Assembly (NCBI GenBank): GCA_025603075.1
Contig: MU626320.1
Coordinates: 1-64,000 of the forward strand
From: Neoconidiobolus thromboides FSU 785
Lineage: Eukaryota > Fungi > Entomophthoromycota
Reading direction: 5' to 3'
Length of the DNA: 64,000 nucleotides
The position numbers and the translations under genes were made by a program. Under the pieces are notes generated by a model. That model was not told where the DNA came from and ran no database searches. It worked only from the letters and a program-made list of their open reading frames with translations. Positions 15,421 to 38,061 of this stretch are shown here, one piece after another. Each line of letters begins with the position of its first letter. Within the stretch, counting starts at the first letter, position 1.

Positions 15421-16062
15421 GAACCTCAGAAAATCTTAAACTAGAAGAAAATAGTATTTAGGTCTAGACTAAGTTCTACATTAATTTAAAAGGCTTCTTT
15501 TTTGTAAACATAGAAATTGAAAGTTTGTAAGTAGTTATCATCAATATTAAACTAGCACTATATCAACATTTCTGTCATGTTTTGTTAACTATTCTTCCTG
15601 TAATTGTATAAATTTTTAATCTATTTTAAATAACTAGTAGTAAAAAACTGTGTAAAATAGATAAGCAATAAATGTACTATATAAAAGAACTTGTAACAAT
15701 TAATTCTCATTAAAAAAAATTTTTTGATTAAATTTACCAAACTAATGTTTAGTAAATTGGCTGTATTAACTTTTCATATAATTTTCTTAAAAATGTATTT
15801 ACATTAGTATTAGAAAGTTTATATAAAAAGGAAAATAAAATTATTAATATAATTCAAAAAATATGATAAGATTATTAGGTTTAGGAATTGGCCTTTTGTT
15901 ATTTTAATGTAAACTACCAATCAAAGTTAGGATATATATATACTTCCATATCCTGTTATTATCACTTATATCATTTCTTTAACAAGTTTAATTTTTACCT
16001 TTTCCTCTTTTTATTTTTTCGGAAGTTTACGTAAAAAAATCTTGATAGCTTTATGGTATAAT

Positions 16063-16383
16063 ATAATTTGTTAAAGATAGTAAATAGTCAACTTCAAGCA
16101 AAAAGTAAAATAAAATAGGTATAGAGATAAAAATAGGGATTAAATAATTAGCTTTTTTATTTCATCAATACAATTATAAACTATAATATTATAACTCCTT
16201 TTATTTTTCTAGAAAGGGTCATTTTTAACTCTTTTTTCTTAACCTAAAAAATATTGATAAAGATTATACTAGATAGAGTTTTTTTGATGAAAGATATCAT
16301 TATCTAAGTAAAGAAAAGATACTTATCATATAATGACAAACAATTAAGACATTGACAGAAGAAGAAATGTTTAACTCTTTAGA
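16063..16383 (+). promoter_or_regulatory. Upstream module shared with peptide precursor gene 2 (inverted copy at 37292-37611)
   Basis: About 9 differences in ~320 bp versus the reverse complement of 37292-37611; ends 148 bp before the ATG. Confidence 0.8.
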
Positions 16384-16452: not shown

Positions 16453-16460
16453 TATATAAA
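16453..16460 (+). promoter_or_regulatory. TATA box of precursor gene 1
   Basis: TATATAAA ~75 bp upstream of the ATG; equivalent TATATAAA at 37223-37216 for gene 2. Confidence 0.5.
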
Positions 16461-16530
16461 CCCCATAGCAACACTATAACTTAAACATCAAAAAAAATAC
16501 AATTTTTATTGACTTGTAAAAATTAAAAAA

Positions 16531-16983
16531 ATGAAATTGACTTCCTATATTGTTTTATTCGGTATAATTGCTTCCTCTTCTAGCCTTTCTCTAAAAAATG
16601 TCCGTGAGGTTAGTAAAAATACTTTAGGACGACGTTTTATTCCTCCTCAGTTATTTGATCAATTGGCATCAGCTAAAGCTTTTTTTAGACGCAAATATCA
16701 AGTTGATAGTAATGGAGGTGAAGTCTTAAGTAAACGTTTTGATCAAATGTTTATGGATGCACTTAATGGACGTATTCCTGGAGTTAACTATCGTAGAGGT
16801 AAAGAGGGAGACAAGAGTTTAAGTAAACGTTTTGATCAAATGTTTATGGATGCAGTTAATGGACGTATTCCTGGAGTTAACTATCGTAGAGGTAAAGAGG
16901 GAGACGAGAGTTTAAGTAAACGTTTTGATCAAATGTTTATGGATGCAGTTAATGGACGTATTCCTGGAGTTAACTATCGCTGA
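16531..16983 (+). CDS. Secreted Kex2-processed repeat-peptide precursor 1 (KEP-like), 150 aa
   Basis: Signal peptide; three 93-bp repeats encoding KR-FDQMFMDA(L/V)NGRIPGVNY-RR, plus RR-FIPPQLFDQLASAKAFF-RR. Confidence 0.92.
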   Translation: MKLTSYIVLFGIIASSSSLSLKNVREVSKNTLGRRFIPPQLFDQLASAKAFFRRKYQVDSNGGEVLSKRFDQMFMDALNGRIPGVNYRRGKEGDKSLSKRFDQMFMDAVNGRIPGVNYRRGKEGDESLSKRFDQMFMDAVNGRIPGVNYR

Positions 16984-17201
16984 AATAATAAAAGGAGTAA
17001 CTACATTTAGTCATGTAGAATAATTAAAGGTTTTGAATACTAAAAATTTCAAATTTCAAATTCACATTATTTAGTTTTGTATATAGAAATCACAGGGGAA
17101 AAGTGTAGTTTAGTATAATGTTTTGATGTTTAATAAAAGTACGTTATAGAACCTTAAGATAATCGAAACAATTGATTCTAAAAAAAGAGTAGACAAAATA
17201 T

Positions 17202-17300
17202 GGGGATGTATTTTTGTGTTTAAGAATTTTGTTAACAATTTTTCCACTTAAATAGCATTTAAAAGATGGAAAAAGTAATGAAATCAAAAAAAACATCCCC
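17202..17300 (+). mobile_element. ~97-bp MITE copy
   Basis: GGGGATGT...ACATCCCC, ATAT flanks. Confidence 0.9.
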
Positions 17301-17783
17301 ATATTCAAACTTAAAGCCTGAGGGAATTTCAATTGAAATTGTTTAGTTAAATAGATGTTACAAAACACTAACTTCAAAAAATGATTAATAATAAGAAAAC
17401 ACAATTTTAAAAAGAAACATAACTTCTAAACATAATTCTCAAATGTCTTTGGACTTCAAGTCTGTTATTTACAATTTTTAAAATAGATTCCAAATTCATT
17501 TCTCATTTTCTTTTTGATTGAATAAATTCCTTCTTAGCCTTTTTACCTAGCCATGTTTTAAAATAGTGCTATTTAGTATGCTATAGAAAATTCATGTTAT
17601 TTTTGATAAATGCTTTGTTATCATGTTTTTAAAAAATTGTCTATCATTTTTCTAAATAATAGCTATACTTTTGGAGATAAAATAAAATTTTACTTATTAA
17701 TTTATTAAATTAATTGTATTTTTAAATTACTTGTAAGATTAACTTTGTAAGATTAACTACAAACTAAAAACTGAGTATCATTT

Positions 17784-17879
17784 GGGGATGTATCTTTGTG
17801 TTTAAGGATTTTACTAACAAATTTTCTGCTCAAATAGTGCTTAAAAAATGGAAAAAGTGAAGCCAAAAAAGATATTCCC
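17784..17879 (+). mobile_element. ~97-bp MITE copy
   Basis: Direct ATTT/ATTT flanks. Confidence 0.85.
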
Positions 17880-18010
17880 ATTTAAAGATTAAAAATCAGT
17901 CTGAAAAAAATAAAAAAAATAAAGAGTAATCAAGGATAAGTAAAGTAACAAAAAAGGACATAAAAAATTAAACTATTGTTTATCAATAGATATGTTACTA
18001 AATTACAAAA

Positions 18011-19534: not shown

Positions 19535-21274
19535 ATGAGATTACTTTTACCTTTAATTTATTTGACTCAATTAATATTGAGCAAAGAAGTGAGTCAAGAA
19601 TGGACTCTTACCGATGCTAAAATGGCACCTGATAACTTTGTAGTCGATGGGGTATTAATCAATGGTCAATTCCCAGGTCCTCAAATTGATGCTACTGCTG
19701 GTGATTCAATCAAAATCAAAGTGAATAATCAATTACATAAGAATGTAACTATTCATTGGCATGGAATTACTCAAAAAGGATCCATTAAAGCGGATGGAGC
19801 ACCTATGGTCACTCAAGAACCTATAATGCCAGGAAAGAGTTACATTTATAGTTTTAATTTACATGATCAAAGTGGTACTTACTTTTATCATGCTCATACA
19901 GATATGGATTCAGAGCATATTTATGGAGCATTAATTGTTCAAGATAAAAAAGAAATTTGGAATGATATTATTAAATTTAATTCGGAATATAAATATGATG
20001 AAGAAATAACTGTCTTATTGTCTGAAAGATGGCATAAAACAACAGAAGAACTAATTCATGGCTTAACTACTGTTCCTTTTAAATTTAGTAATCAATCCCA
20101 AAGTATATTAACTAACGGTAGAACTTATCAAAAATGGGAGAATAATATGAATGGTGGTACTGCTGAAGATTTAAAGAGATTCAATGATGGCTTTAGTGTT
20201 ATTAATGTAAAACCAAATAAAACATATAGATTACGTTTGATAGGTGCTAATGGCTATTCTCTATTTACATATAACATTGAAGGTCATGATTTAACTATTA
20301 TTGAAGCAGATGGCACTTTAATTGATCCTATTAAAGTAGATAGAGTAGAATTAAGTAGTGGTCAACGATATTCTGTATTATTGAAAACAAACAAAAAAGT
20401 AGATAATTATTATATGTATACCCAAGTGAGTGATGAATTAAGACCTGAAGCACGTAAACCAGTAGCTAAAAATGGAGTAGCTATTCTTCATTATGATGGC
20501 GCAAAGAGTACTTCATCTTTAATACGTACAGATAAACAAGTACCTGGATTACAATTTGAATATTCCCATTGGGTAGAATCTAAACTATTTACTTCTAAAT
20601 GGTACAATAAAGGATTATCTAAACATTTTTACCCAGTACCAAAGAAGGCAACTAAAGAAATCAATTTAATAGTTACATTAAGAAAACCAAATACAATATC
20701 AAGATGGTTTATCAATGATAATGATAATAAACCAAGGGATAGTGTATTAATTGAAGATATGCAGTCTGGAAAATATAAACCAAGTGCAGGTATTTATGAA
20801 ATTAAAGAAGGTGATGATGTTCAAATTATTGTACAACATACAATGCCAACTGGTAAACATTGTGAAGTTCATCCATGGCATTTACATGGTCATTCATTCT
20901 ATGTTGTTGGACATGGTGATGGATTTTATGATCCAAAAGTAGATGGTCCGAAGATTGATAATTATTTAGCGACTACTAAGAATAATCCTATTTTAAGAGA
21001 CACTTATACTCAATTTATTACAGATGTTCCGGAAGTGGGTAAACCTCTAAATCAAACTAATTCTAGACTTGGCCCTATTGATGATAGTGTAGATATGTTT
21101 TCTGGACTTGATGGATTAGGTGAAAAACCACTCAATTCAGATGATCTTCCTTGTGGTTGGTATGCTATTCGCTTTAAGGCTGATAACCCAGGGGCTTGGT
21201 TTATGCATTGTCATATGGCAGCTCATATCATCATGGGTAAAATAGTTATTATTAACTATGTTCCTAAGAATTAA
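19535..21274 (+). CDS. Secreted multicopper oxidase (laccase/ascorbate oxidase-like), 579 aa, intronless
   Basis: Signal peptide; all four Cu motifs HWHG, YFYHAH, HPWHLHGH, HCHMAAHIIMG. Confidence 0.95.
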   Translation: MRLLLPLIYLTQLILSKEVSQEWTLTDAKMAPDNFVVDGVLINGQFPGPQIDATAGDSIKIKVNNQLHKNVTIHWHGITQKGSIKADGAPMVTQEPIMPGKSYIYSFNLHDQSGTYFYHAHTDMDSEHIYGALIVQDKKEIWNDIIKFNSEYKYDEEITVLLSERWHKTTEELIHGLTTVPFKFSNQSQSILTNGRTYQKWENNMNGGTAEDLKRFNDGFSVINVKPNKTYRLRLIGANGYSLFTYNIEGHDLTIIEADGTLIDPIKVDRVELSSGQRYSVLLKTNKKVDNYYMYTQVSDELRPEARKPVAKNGVAILHYDGAKSTSSLIRTDKQVPGLQFEYSHWVESKLFTSKWYNKGLSKHFYPVPKKATKEINLIVTLRKPNTISRWFINDNDNKPRDSVLIEDMQSGKYKPSAGIYEIKEGDDVQIIVQHTMPTGKHCEVHPWHLHGHSFYVVGHGDGFYDPKVDGPKIDNYLATTKNNPILRDTYTQFITDVPEVGKPLNQTNSRLGPIDDSVDMFSGLDGLGEKPLNSDDLPCGWYAIRFKADNPGAWFMHCHMAAHIIMGKIVIINYVPKN

Positions 21275-34708: not shown

Positions 34709-35121
34709 CTCTATATTATAATAGATGCAAGACCAAGGTCCAAAGACATTTGAAAAGAATTTTTAGAGTTACGATTAATATTTTCCAAATACACGTTTCC
34801 TTACCACTAAACATTTTTTGAAGTTTGTTTTGCGATACTTAGTAGGTTTGAGATCTCAATTTAAGTTGCATCAAAATCCAAGCTTTGAAATTCTATCTGT
34901 TCCTTTCTTAAATCAAAAATTTTGATTACATTGTGACTTTATAAGTTCTATTAAATTATATATTAAAATAATAAAGATTAAGAATATTTGTATACCCTGA
35001 TATTCATATTTAATAGTAATAAAATCATATAAATTTAAACTTTTAAACTATTGCAATTAAAAATCATTATTTCAATATTTTGGATGGTTAAATTTAGTTA
35101 CCTCAGTTAGTTATGTTTTAG

Positions 35122-35471
35122 CTACCAAAGGCGATCACCATTAAGTACGACCATATAGGGTGTATAAAAACACTTTTCTAAAGCATCATACCCTTGATAA
35201 ATTTCGTCATATTTATCTTCAAATTCTTGAGCATTTCTGAGTATTTCACTAAGTAGATTAAAACTACCTTGGCCTTACTGTAAAATATCACCTCCTTCAT
35301 AACTTCTATTGAATTTACCCGCACTATGAGCAGAATTCAATGCTACCAAAAAGTCTGTAATTGTACATTTTTTCTAAAGCATTCTCACTTGAATCGCCCG
35401 CATTTATAAATAAATAAAGACTGGAAGAAGAAATAGTGGTAATGAATAAAACAATACGAAGTCAACTCTAT
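35122..35471 (-). pseudogene. Decayed KEP-family peptide precursor
   Basis: ATA for ATG, two frameshifts, one stop; IVLFITTISSSSL...ENALEK(C)...FNRSYEGGDILQ*...DALEK(C)FYTPYMVVLNGDRLW. Confidence 0.75.
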
Positions 35472-36626
35472 TTTTTTGCTTTTAATGGTTCATGAGAATT
35501 GCGCTTTTTTTATACTCGAAGTGTGAGTTTTATTTGAGGTTCACATGCTGTTGTTGTTATCTTATAATAGACTTTTGTTAGGATATATTTCACTCTTTTA
35601 TAGTAATAGATAGGACTTTGAAGGGCTAATTTTTACTTCTTCGTCCAATATTTTACTTGCTTATTGATTTATAATCTACTTTTTCTTTACTTAGATGATG
35701 ATACCTTTTATAATGGAATTTACAGTTGATAAATTTTACTTGATGATTTATAAGTTAAGAGAAAAAAGTTAAGAACCCACCTTCAAAAAGGGAGCTGTAG
35801 TTCAATCTTTTATAGTCATATTGATAAAATAAACAAAGAGTCCAAATTTGATGTTTTAAAATAGACATCTATATTTAAGTATTGCCTATTTTACATCACT
35901 TTTTTTGAAACTTTTTTTTGGCTTTTTAAATGAGCTACTATTGTTTGCTACTTCTGTCCTAAAAGAGTTATATTAGACCATAAACTCAAACAAGTTTTTT
36001 TCTATATAACTTCCGAAAAAAATTCAAGGAAAAAGGAGCAAAAAGAGCTAATCATTTTAAAAGTTCTGAAAAAGTTCTAATAATTTTATAAAAGTAAGTT
36101 TGTATTTTAATTTACTTGATATCATCTATTCTATAAAGGATAATAGTTGTTATTGACTGCCAATTTGATAATGTGTATTTATTGTTTATTCATTTTATAG
36201 AAATTTTTATAATTAACTGTCTTAATGTAGACAATTTCTTTACAAATAATAATTTTAATATTTTGTTATATACATAACAACTTTATAATAAATAATAAAA
36301 TTTAAATACTTTTATGAATTTTATTAGCCTTATAATAGTCGTTTTTTACTATAGTGTAACATTTTAAAGCCCCATATATAAAACGTCGAGATGTGTAAAT
36401 CATTACTTCAGCTATCTTAAGATTTTATAAGATACTTTAAATTCTATATCAAAACATTGAAGATAGAGTACATTTCAATCCAGTTATTTACATATATAAA
36501 GGATAGAATCATGAAAATTTAAATTAAACATTTAGAATCAAAAATATTTATTTGAAGTATTTTGAAGGATTAAGCGTATGTATCACATTTAGTGTTCATA
36601 CACTAAGGTGATTAATTCTAAGGATC

Positions 36627-37148
36627 TTAACCTTGGATCATTTGTTCAAGAATATGAGGAGGGATAAAACGCTTTCCTAAATCATCATTTCCACCATAGC
36701 TTCTACGATAGTTACCGTTCATCAGTTGGTGAAAAGTATTAGGAGGGGGGATAAAGCGTTTTTCTAAATCATCGTTCCCACCATAGCTTCTACGATAGTT
36801 ACCGTTCATCAGTTGGTGAAAAGTATTAGGAGGGGGGATAAAACGTTGTTGTAAGGTATTATCTACTTTGTTACTATCAGGATAACTACGCCCAAAAAGA
36901 TTACCTGCTGCAATTTGATCAAGCAAATAAGGAGAAATAAAACGTTGTTGTAAAGTACTATCTACTTTAGCATTATCTGGATGGTCACGCCTAAAAATAC
37001 CTTTAGCTGCTGACAATTGTTCAAGTACATAAGGAGGAATAAATCGTTGCCCTAAAGCATTCTTAGCAACCTCACGTACATTTTTAAGAGGAAGGCTGAT
37101 AGAAGAAGCAATGGCAGTGAATAAGACAACACAAGAAGTCAATTTCAT
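36627..37148 (-). CDS. Secreted repeat-peptide precursor 2 (KEP-like), 173 aa
   Basis: Signal/pro region homologous to precursor 1; five cores starting FI(P/S)P after QR or KR; 87-bp repeat encoding FIPPPNTFHQLMNGNY-RR-SYGGNDDL(E/G)-KR. Confidence 0.92.
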   Translation of the reverse strand: MKLTSCVVLFTAIASSISLPLKNVREVAKNALGQRFIPPYVLEQLSAAKGIFRRDHPDNAKVDSTLQQRFISPYLLDQIAAGNLFGRSYPDSNKVDNTLQQRFIPPPNTFHQLMNGNYRRSYGGNDDLEKRFIPPPNTFHQLMNGNYRRSYGGNDDLGKRFIPPHILEQMIQG

Positions 37149-37291: not shown

Positions 37292-37611
37292 TCTAAAGAG
37301 TTAAACATTTCTTCTTCTGCTAATGTCTCAATTGTTTGTCATTATATGATAAGTATCTTTTCCTTACTCGGATAATGATATCTTTCATCAAAAAAACTCT
37401 ATCTAGTATAATATTTATCAATATTTTTTAGGTTAAGAAAAAAGAGTTAAAAATGACCCTTTCTAGAAAAATAAAAGGAGTTATAATATTATAGTTTATA
37501 ATTGTATTGATGAAATAAAAAAGCTAATTATTTAATCCCTATTTTTATCTCTATACCTATTTTATTTTACTTTTTGCTTGAAGTTGACTATTACTATTTT
37601 TAACAAATTAT
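37292..37611 (-). promoter_or_regulatory. Upstream module shared with precursor gene 1
   Basis: Near-identical reverse complement of 16063-16383; ends 144 bp before the ATG. Confidence 0.8.
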
Positions 37612-38061
37612 GTTGCGTCACGGATGTTAGATATTTATATATAAACTTCTAAATAAAAGAGTGAAAAAAGGGTTAAAAAAATACATTTGCTCATTAAAGA
37701 AATGACAAAGAGATAATAGCAGAATTAAAAAGTAAATACATTCTAAAATTAGTTGTTAGATTTACATTAAGGTAATAAAAGGCTAACTTTTAGATGTAAT
37801 AGTCAAATTATCCTTAAAATTCTAATGATAACTTTGTTTTTCTTTTTGAAATAAACCTGTTGATTATATTGATAAACAAGTTTTAAAAAAACATATTTTA
37901 AAATATAAAATTGATTTATAAAATCTTACTTTAAAAAAATTCTTCAAAATTTTTATTTTATAAAAGACTGATACTATAGCTTCTTTTATAAAATATACCT
38001 ATTATTTACTTTTTTTTACCCACATTTTATAATTAGTTATTTAAAAATAAAAATACTATAT

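Follow-up and report, generated by a model that had tools for sequence, protein, structure and literature searches.

A predicted Kex2-processed repeat protein and its paralogue in the entomophthoralean fungus Neoconidiobolus thromboides

Results and discussion

The precursor gene and its product

The stretch of DNA analysed here, henceforth the window, comprises the first 64,000 nucleotides of contig MU626320.1 of Neoconidiobolus thromboides FSU 785, and carries an intact open reading frame (ORF) running from ATG to TGA, whose 150-residue product we term precursor 1 (Table 1). The probability that an open frame of 150 codons arises by chance in DNA of 26% GC is about 1e-6. The first-pass annotation, which was made from the letters alone, had described a signal peptide, a short pro-segment and a series of cores bounded by dibasic sites and separated by polar spacers, and the translation agrees with this architecture in every detail. 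Residues 1-20 are signal-like by a heuristic, with an initial MK, a 12-residue hydrophobic stretch (Kyte-Doolittle mean up to 2.8 over 9 residues) and a Ser-rich end, and the [KR]R pairs of the protein lie at residues 34, 53, 68, 88, 99, 119 and 130. The first of the four cores is of a FIPP type, and the other three share an FDQ-type sequence, FDQMFMDA(L/V)NGRIPGVNY, which occurs once in its Leu form and twice in its Val form. The repeat array terminates exactly one basic residue (Arg) past the last core.

At the DNA level Tandem Repeats Finder delineates an array at 16726-16979 with a period of 93, 2.7 copies and 98% matches, which bears out the near-identity of the 93-bp units that had been remarked upon at first reading. 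Repeat units 1 and 2 differ by two bases, both of which change the encoded amino acid (L/V and K/E). The ESM Atlas model of the whole protein (pLDDT 0.51, pTM 0.18) is that of a disordered polypeptide without a stable fold. Phe and Met are abundant in the cores, the FDQ core contains a Pro-Gly turn, and the predicted peptides carry a net charge of 0 or -1, their helical hydrophobic moment being 0.18-0.26.

Table 1. Positions of the features discussed in the text (window coordinates, except for the decayed copy on contig C104)
Feature	Position	Strand	Evidence or remark
Non-coding module, 324 bp, common to both peptide genes	16060..16383	+	Counterpart at 37292-37614 (-)
TATATAAA box	16453..16460	+	Invariant in the alignment with the paralogue; X1 depth climbs just downstream
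Precursor 1 CDS, 150 aa + stop, intronless	16531..16983	+	ORF reading; no joints in the contigs of run X1
Predicted signal peptide, ~aa 1-20	16531..16590	+	Heuristic (n-, h- and c-regions)
Pro-segment, aa 21-35, ends L-G-R-R	16591..16635	+	Best-conserved protein segment between the paralogues
Core 1, 17-aa FIPP-type peptide	16636..16686	+	Translation; RR at 16687-16692
Polar spacer 1, ends L-S-K-R	16693..16737	+	Translation
Core 2, 18-aa FDQ-type peptide, Leu variant	16738..16791	+	Translation
RR + 9-aa polar spacer + KR	16792..16830	+	Translation
Core 3, FDQ-type, Val variant	16831..16884	+	Translation
RR + 9-aa polar spacer + KR	16885..16923	+	Translation
Core 4, FDQ-type, Val variant; then one Arg + stop codon	16924..16977	+	Translation
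AATAAA	16987..16992	+	Directly past the stop codon; X1 depth near zero beyond ~17002
Multicopper oxidase, laccase/ascorbate-oxidase-like	19535-21274	+	2.5 kb downstream of precursor 1
Decayed third copy	~35110..35480	-	Start reads ATA; frameshifts and stops; KR -> KC
Paralogue (precursor 2), 173 aa, five FIPP-type cores	36627..37148	-	42-46% identity; repeat units align with those of precursor 1
Decayed copy, contig C104	L004 1480-1800	-	Start reads GTG; frameshift; KR -> KC

Transcription of the precursor gene

Parts of the window are carried by four public runs (X1-X4), in all cases as contigs. Run X1 is labelled as RNA by guess only; we treat it as RNA on account of a several-hundred-fold step in its depth at the borders of the ORF and of gaps in its coverage of the flanks, a pattern unlike that of genomic DNA. 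Its contigs span 16454-17002, where the depth is very high, and the ORF contains no joint, which points to the lack of an intron. The depth over the ORF is 100-500 times that of neighbouring DNA: summed depths are 26,000-89,000 in the bins from 16515 to 17002, and a 102-nt contig confined to the unique 5' portion of the ORF shows a depth of 23,757. By comparison, values of 48-271 were seen between 16025 and 16531, and at 15722-15965 and 17003-17185 the depth was zero or close to it. With X1 taken as RNA on this pattern of depth, the gene for precursor 1 is abundantly transcribed; a transcript, the absence of which had been named as grounds for abandoning the original reading, is on this view present. 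The TATATAAA box upstream of the gene, the AATAAA downstream of it and the depth profile together agree with a compact transcript, about 0.5 kb long and free of introns.

The copy of the gene in run X3 has a single difference, A to G at 16939, which replaces Met by Val in the last core, and its loose ends read as the signal-peptide sequence of the paralogue described below. Fragments 100% identical to the gene, mapping to 16518-16761 and 16814-16936 of the window, are also found in X2 and X4, two runs from 2016 labelled as other organisms, at depths of 2.6 and 10.5; these may represent carry-over of a very abundant transcript between libraries.

A paralogue and decayed copies

A second gene, encoding precursor 2, lies on the opposite strand of the window, and the two precursors can be aligned over their whole length at about 46% identity. 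Both this second gene and the F..NG..NY-RR pattern common to the two, as originally proposed, are therefore real. The DNA of the signal-peptide region is 77% identical between the paralogues. Estimates of dN/dS, all from small counts, are about 0.5 over residues 1-54, about 0.19 for the pro-segment and more than 1 for the first core. The alignment shows the FDQ cores of precursor 1 to be homologous to the FIPPPNTFHQLMNGNY cores of precursor 2, from which they differ in missing the residues aligned to IPP and in possessing a five-residue RIPGV insertion; therefore, all cores descend from one FIPP-type ancestor.

Apart from the two intact genes, two decayed copies were recovered, one between them in the window and one on another contig. 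A search of the entire genome assembly (24.6 Mb in 799 contigs) with a back-translated L-x-x-R-F-I-P-P pattern gave no further family members, the pattern having 8 matches as against 7 for its reversed control. Five of these eight fall within the two known genes, and the other three were rejected, as they correspond respectively to a multi-pass membrane protein, to a frame containing a stop codon and to a site in which Ser replaces Arg. The paralogue and the two decayed copies record a fast birth-and-death turnover.

Genomic neighbourhood

Upstream of each of the two peptide genes lies a copy of a non-coding module that has only these two copies in the genome. They are 97.2% identical over 323 aligned bases, as against 65-66% in both flanks, and the synonymous divergence in the coding sequence adjacent to the module is about 0.4. 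Both variants are present in X1 contigs at low depth. The module lacks an ORF and terminal inverted repeats and gives no RNA-fold signal (z of +0.66 and +0.29), and in view of these features and of its mere two copies we rejected its interpretation as an RNA or a mobile element. It is likely to be either a recent gene-conversion patch or a common, strongly constrained enhancer. A scan of the whole window against Rfam gave no match.

Downstream of the gene for precursor 1, at 17198-17305, is a dispersed element of about 107 nt, with a second copy near 17760-17880. At least 52 copies with 78-96% identity were scored, out of 3911 first-look candidates on many contigs, and the element is found in many RNA-like contigs; it looks like a MITE or a SINE.

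The nearby multicopper oxidase is one of at least 8 paralogues in the fungus, of which copies on other contigs are 81% and 75% identical to it and bear K502DRAFT tags of N. thromboides FSU 785. Its next relatives come from Entomophthora, Massospora and Basidiobolus, in keeping with the early-diverging fungal host that had been deduced for this DNA. The other neighbours in the window include an HD/PhyH pair, a trypsin and housekeeping genes. As nothing ties the oxidase or any of these to the peptides, we rejected a reading of the region as a gene cluster.

Predicted cleavage sites and a proposed model of processing

All core starts of both intact genes (nine of nine) have the form L-x-x-R followed by Phe. 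In the alignment of the paralogues the Leu at P4 and the Arg at P1 are almost the only invariant residues of the spacers, and at the core ends [F/Y]-R-R is likewise invariant. As the three repeats of precursor 1 are near-identical, conservation within this protein alone cannot separate core from spacer. An aliphatic P4 residue is favoured by Kex2, and Kex2 sites in fungal effectors are predicted with an extended LxxR motif (PMC8528282); the L-x-x-R core starts are consistent with both. Three core starts of the paralogue have Gln at P2 in place of Lys or Arg and make poor canonical Kex2 sites, so another Arg-specific protease may take part. The genome possesses a kexin gene, a 597-aa ORF on contig C335 with Peptidase_S8 (E 7e-45) and P_proprotein (E 3e-23) domains, and a second P-domain locus is present on contig C54. 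Cutting by Kex2 followed by trimming by Kex1 has been proven for Ece1p of Candida (PMC5784256).

These features suggest the following course of events. The N-terminal signal peptide would direct the 150-aa product into the ER, and in the late Golgi a kexin-type convertase would cut past the Arg of each L-x-x-R that precedes Phe, and past each RR, after which a Kex1-type carboxypeptidase would remove the remaining basic residues. The predicted secreted products are one 17-aa FIPP peptide (monoisotopic mass 1939.02), one FDQ peptide of the Leu form (2086.96) and two of the Val form (2072.95), accompanied by small polar spacer peptides; an extra cut past the internal (L/V)-N-G-R of the FDQ cores is also possible. 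We consider it probable that precursor 1 is a lineage-restricted Kex2-processed repeat protein, predicted to be secreted and cut into four peptides, and the mechanism by which these peptides would be produced may, by analogy, be regarded as reasonably secure.

Searches for relatives

For precursor 1, Pfam contained no family with a match above noise, and a word-indexed search of 5.8 billion proteins returned only precursor 1 itself. An exhaustive phmmer search of 1.84 billion protein representatives with precursor 2 as the query returned precursor 1 and two false matches only. One of these (P0002), with a spurious E of 1.5e-18 against the paralogue, is a 61-bp metagenome satellite in 28 copies that is read through in all three frames; it lies at L009 3013-4722 (metagenome contig, ENA ERZ25067543), and since three does not divide its period, it has been annotated as a protein of 670 aa. 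The other (P0003) is an unrelated repeat protein of 1662 aa. Precursor 2 was not its own match in this exhaustive search, and may hence be missing from public protein sets or merged into the cluster of precursor 1. Among JGI metagenome contigs 161 pattern matches were found and none was confirmed by tblastn, sequence searches of the PDB gave nothing meaningful, and the core sequences were not found in the literature searched. A match of the cores to an already characterised family, which would have spoken against the original interpretation, was accordingly not encountered in Pfam, the two protein collections or the PDB.

Place among the Kex2-processed repeat proteins

The definition published for Kex2-processed repeat proteins (KEPs) calls for a signal peptide, for three or more internal repeats, and for KR or RR between the repeats (PMC6339444). 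Precursor 1 displays all three features: the signal peptide as judged by a heuristic, and three 18-aa cores with KR before and RR after the repeated cores. Together with the kexin in the genome, this upholds the assignment of its architecture to this class in the first-pass annotation. The accompanying statement that such proteins are characterised mainly in Dikarya overstated the novelty of the finding, for KEPs were reported from all 16 of 16 Zoopagomycota strains, with 11.56 per strain, the highest density of any phylum (Umemura 2020, PMC7329392). That survey also listed 19 KEPs in Conidiobolus coronatus and found strain-specific duplicated types in Zoopagomycota, and in those of its tables that are searchable N. 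thromboides does not appear among the strains (PMC7329392).

Like the KEPs described by Le Marquer et al. 2019 (PMC6339444) and Umemura 2020 (PMC7329392), precursor 1 combines a signal with at least three near-identical repeats separated by KR/RR, its peptides fall within the commonest length class of 9-24 aa, and it belongs to a lineage-specific duplicated family, as is seen in Zoopagomycota. It departs from them in that its first core differs in type from the repeated cores and that it has no relatives in the collections searched. The suggestion of an undescribed family therefore holds for these cores, for which neither relatives nor a match to a characterised family were found, but not for the class itself, which was already known. 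What is new is the peptide family of precursor 1 only; KEPs as a class are known in Zoopagomycota.

Comparison with other peptide precursors

The Saccharomyces prepro-alpha-factor (MF-alpha-1) resembles precursor 1 in having a signal, a pro-region and repeated peptides that are freed at L-x-K-R sites, and its peptides, which resemble the cores in size, likewise have aromatic ends and a basic-Pro-Gly turn. The aromatic ends and the Arg-Ile-Pro-Gly turn of the cores are reminiscent of ligand-type peptides such as alpha-factor. Unlike prepro-alpha-factor, precursor 1 has RR also on the C-terminal side of its cores and lacks the X-Ala/X-Pro spacers of Ste13; the absence of the latter had been recorded at the outset, and the residues past KR are indeed F-D or F-I. 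The Pfam families MF_alpha and MF_alpha_N gave no match for precursor 1 even at E up to 10. A six-frame search of the genome found no STE2-type receptor, and the control genomes gave no response either.

Ece1p of Candida albicans, the source of candidalysin, is similarly a polyprotein expressed at a high level, from which Kex2 and subsequently Kex1 produce non-identical peptides (PMC5784256). Candidalysin is a hydrophobic peptide of 31 aa with a cationic C-terminus, whereas the cores of precursor 1 have 17-18 aa and are neutral or acidic. The precursors of ustiloxin-type (dikaritin) RiPPs also place repeated cores between Kex2 sites, but those cores are of a 4-residue type and the ones in precursor 1 are much longer. 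A scan of 22 window ORFs, each with 100 aa or more, gave no UstYa/DUF3328 match, in agreement with the earlier statement that the window has no DUF3328 gene; a genome-wide six-frame search found none either, an absence that is soft since the control was silent.

In its overall grammar precursor 1 further recalls animal multi-copy neuropeptide precursors (allatostatin, tachykinin, FMRFamide-like and others). The nearest neighbours of precursor 1 by protein-language-model features are neuropeptide precursors of arthropods, nematodes and vertebrates; their scores of 0.78-0.83 lie in a range also attained by a third of shuffled proteins. Unlike these precursors, the fungal protein has no Pfam neuropeptide match, and its cores do not end in a Gly-dibasic amidation signal; a search of the genome for a peptidylglycine monooxygenase domain found none, the control here being silent. 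We read the likeness, so far as the model features suggest one, as one of architecture only and not as mimicry.

Candidate functions of the peptides

We tentatively favour the view that the predicted peptides are diffusible ligands, with the fungus itself or organisms around it as their target, over the view that they are membrane-lytic toxins, while regarding it as possible rather than probable. Their net charge of 0 or -1 and low hydrophobic moment argue against a cationic membrane-lytic peptide. An antimicrobial or cytolytic role like that of candidalysin from Ece1p is accordingly unlikely, even though the precursor logic of heterogeneous cores between KR sites and the high expression are the same (cf. 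PMC5784256), and the organism, a pathogen whose host range is fairly wide for an entomophthoralean fungus, kills insects (PMC9409958): with 17-18 residues and a Pro-Gly turn, the cores look unlike cationic amphipathic helices. To a similar degree we doubt that the products are a structural or surface-active material coating aerial hyphae or conidiophores, in the manner of the Rep1 repellents of Ustilago maydis, although the very high transcript level, probably in axenic culture, is what would be expected of a bulk material and the abundance of Phe and Met would suit it. This explanation supposes a fungus without hydrophobins, which to our knowledge are confined to Dikarya. Repellent peptides are much longer than the cores of precursor 1, and the latter have low amphipathicity and no sequence likeness to known families. 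Kex2-processed repellents do offer a known precedent (cited in PMC5784256). It is also conceivable, though very improbable, that the product is not cut at all and is secreted as a disordered repeat protein in which the dibasic pairs are incidental. The predicted disorder would agree with this, but at about 45% identity the residues left invariant between the paralogues cluster at L-x-x-R-F and [FY]-R-R, the array terminates right past a core, and the decayed copies have lost exactly these sites.

A further alternative to diffusible ligands is raised by the FIPP cores, which show a resemblance to the PPL motif of protealysin-like M4 peptidase propeptides. Through five short FIPP motifs precursor 2 scores above the Pfam gathering threshold for PF16485 (PLN_propep), at 31.1 bits (E 2e-7). 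Single FIPP cores match PF16485 and no other family, at E 0.005 and 0.008, and 0.26 for core 1 of precursor 1 (17.0, 16.3 and 11.6 bits, where the cut-off is 28.1, over profile positions 1-15 of 43). Two of the cores fit the published motif, [FIV][IV]PP[YH][ILMV]L[EDR], residue for residue. FIPP itself is carried by 45 of 821 natural propeptides, and the first autoprocessing cut of protealysin falls directly before the PPL motif (PMC6778150 and its supplement), so that in both cases the 8-residue motif stands directly past a cleavage site, in the precursors that of the predicted kexin cut. The precursors differ from protealysin propeptides in matching only a third of the profile and in having no protease domain attached. 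A search for Peptidase_M4_C found no match anywhere in the genome, while the control genomes responded; as the fungus thus has no resident M4 peptidase, the motif is not the remnant of a resident protease gene. One might then suppose that the FIPP cores mimic the PPL motif and are secreted as inhibitors or decoy substrates of the protealysin-like M4 proteases of competitors, which, in the insect or the soil, might be bacteria (of Serratia and Photorhabdus types) or other fungi. The Pfam hit of precursor 2, the exclusive match of single cores to PF16485, the exact fit of two cores, the agreement in cut position and the lack of an M4 peptidase in the fungus would all accord with such a role. Nevertheless, we give it only a slight chance: the match spans only about 13 of the 43 profile positions, the repeated copies, which are not independent, inflate the score of the whole protein, the single cores score below the cut-off, a sequence search of solved structures gave nothing, the three repeated cores of precursor 1 are without the motif, and an N-terminal X-X-Pro-Pro could simply protect against aminopeptidases. 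The resemblance is weak and is offered as a lead only. If true, such mimicry would amount to a peptide-based interference with the proteases of competitors, which is not described for KEPs.

Conclusions

Peptides derived from KEPs constitute an almost unexplored layer of fungal chemistry, and we found no characterised KEP product from Zoopagomycota in the literature searched. Precursor 1 provides a handy entry point to it, being encoded by a short, intronless and very abundant transcript in a culturable insect pathogen, with exactly predictable products that are detectable by mass spectrometry. Should these products prove to be signals, protease blockers or host-active agents, they would represent a new peptide family in entomophthoralean biology; otherwise, precursor 1 would be another orphan KEP.
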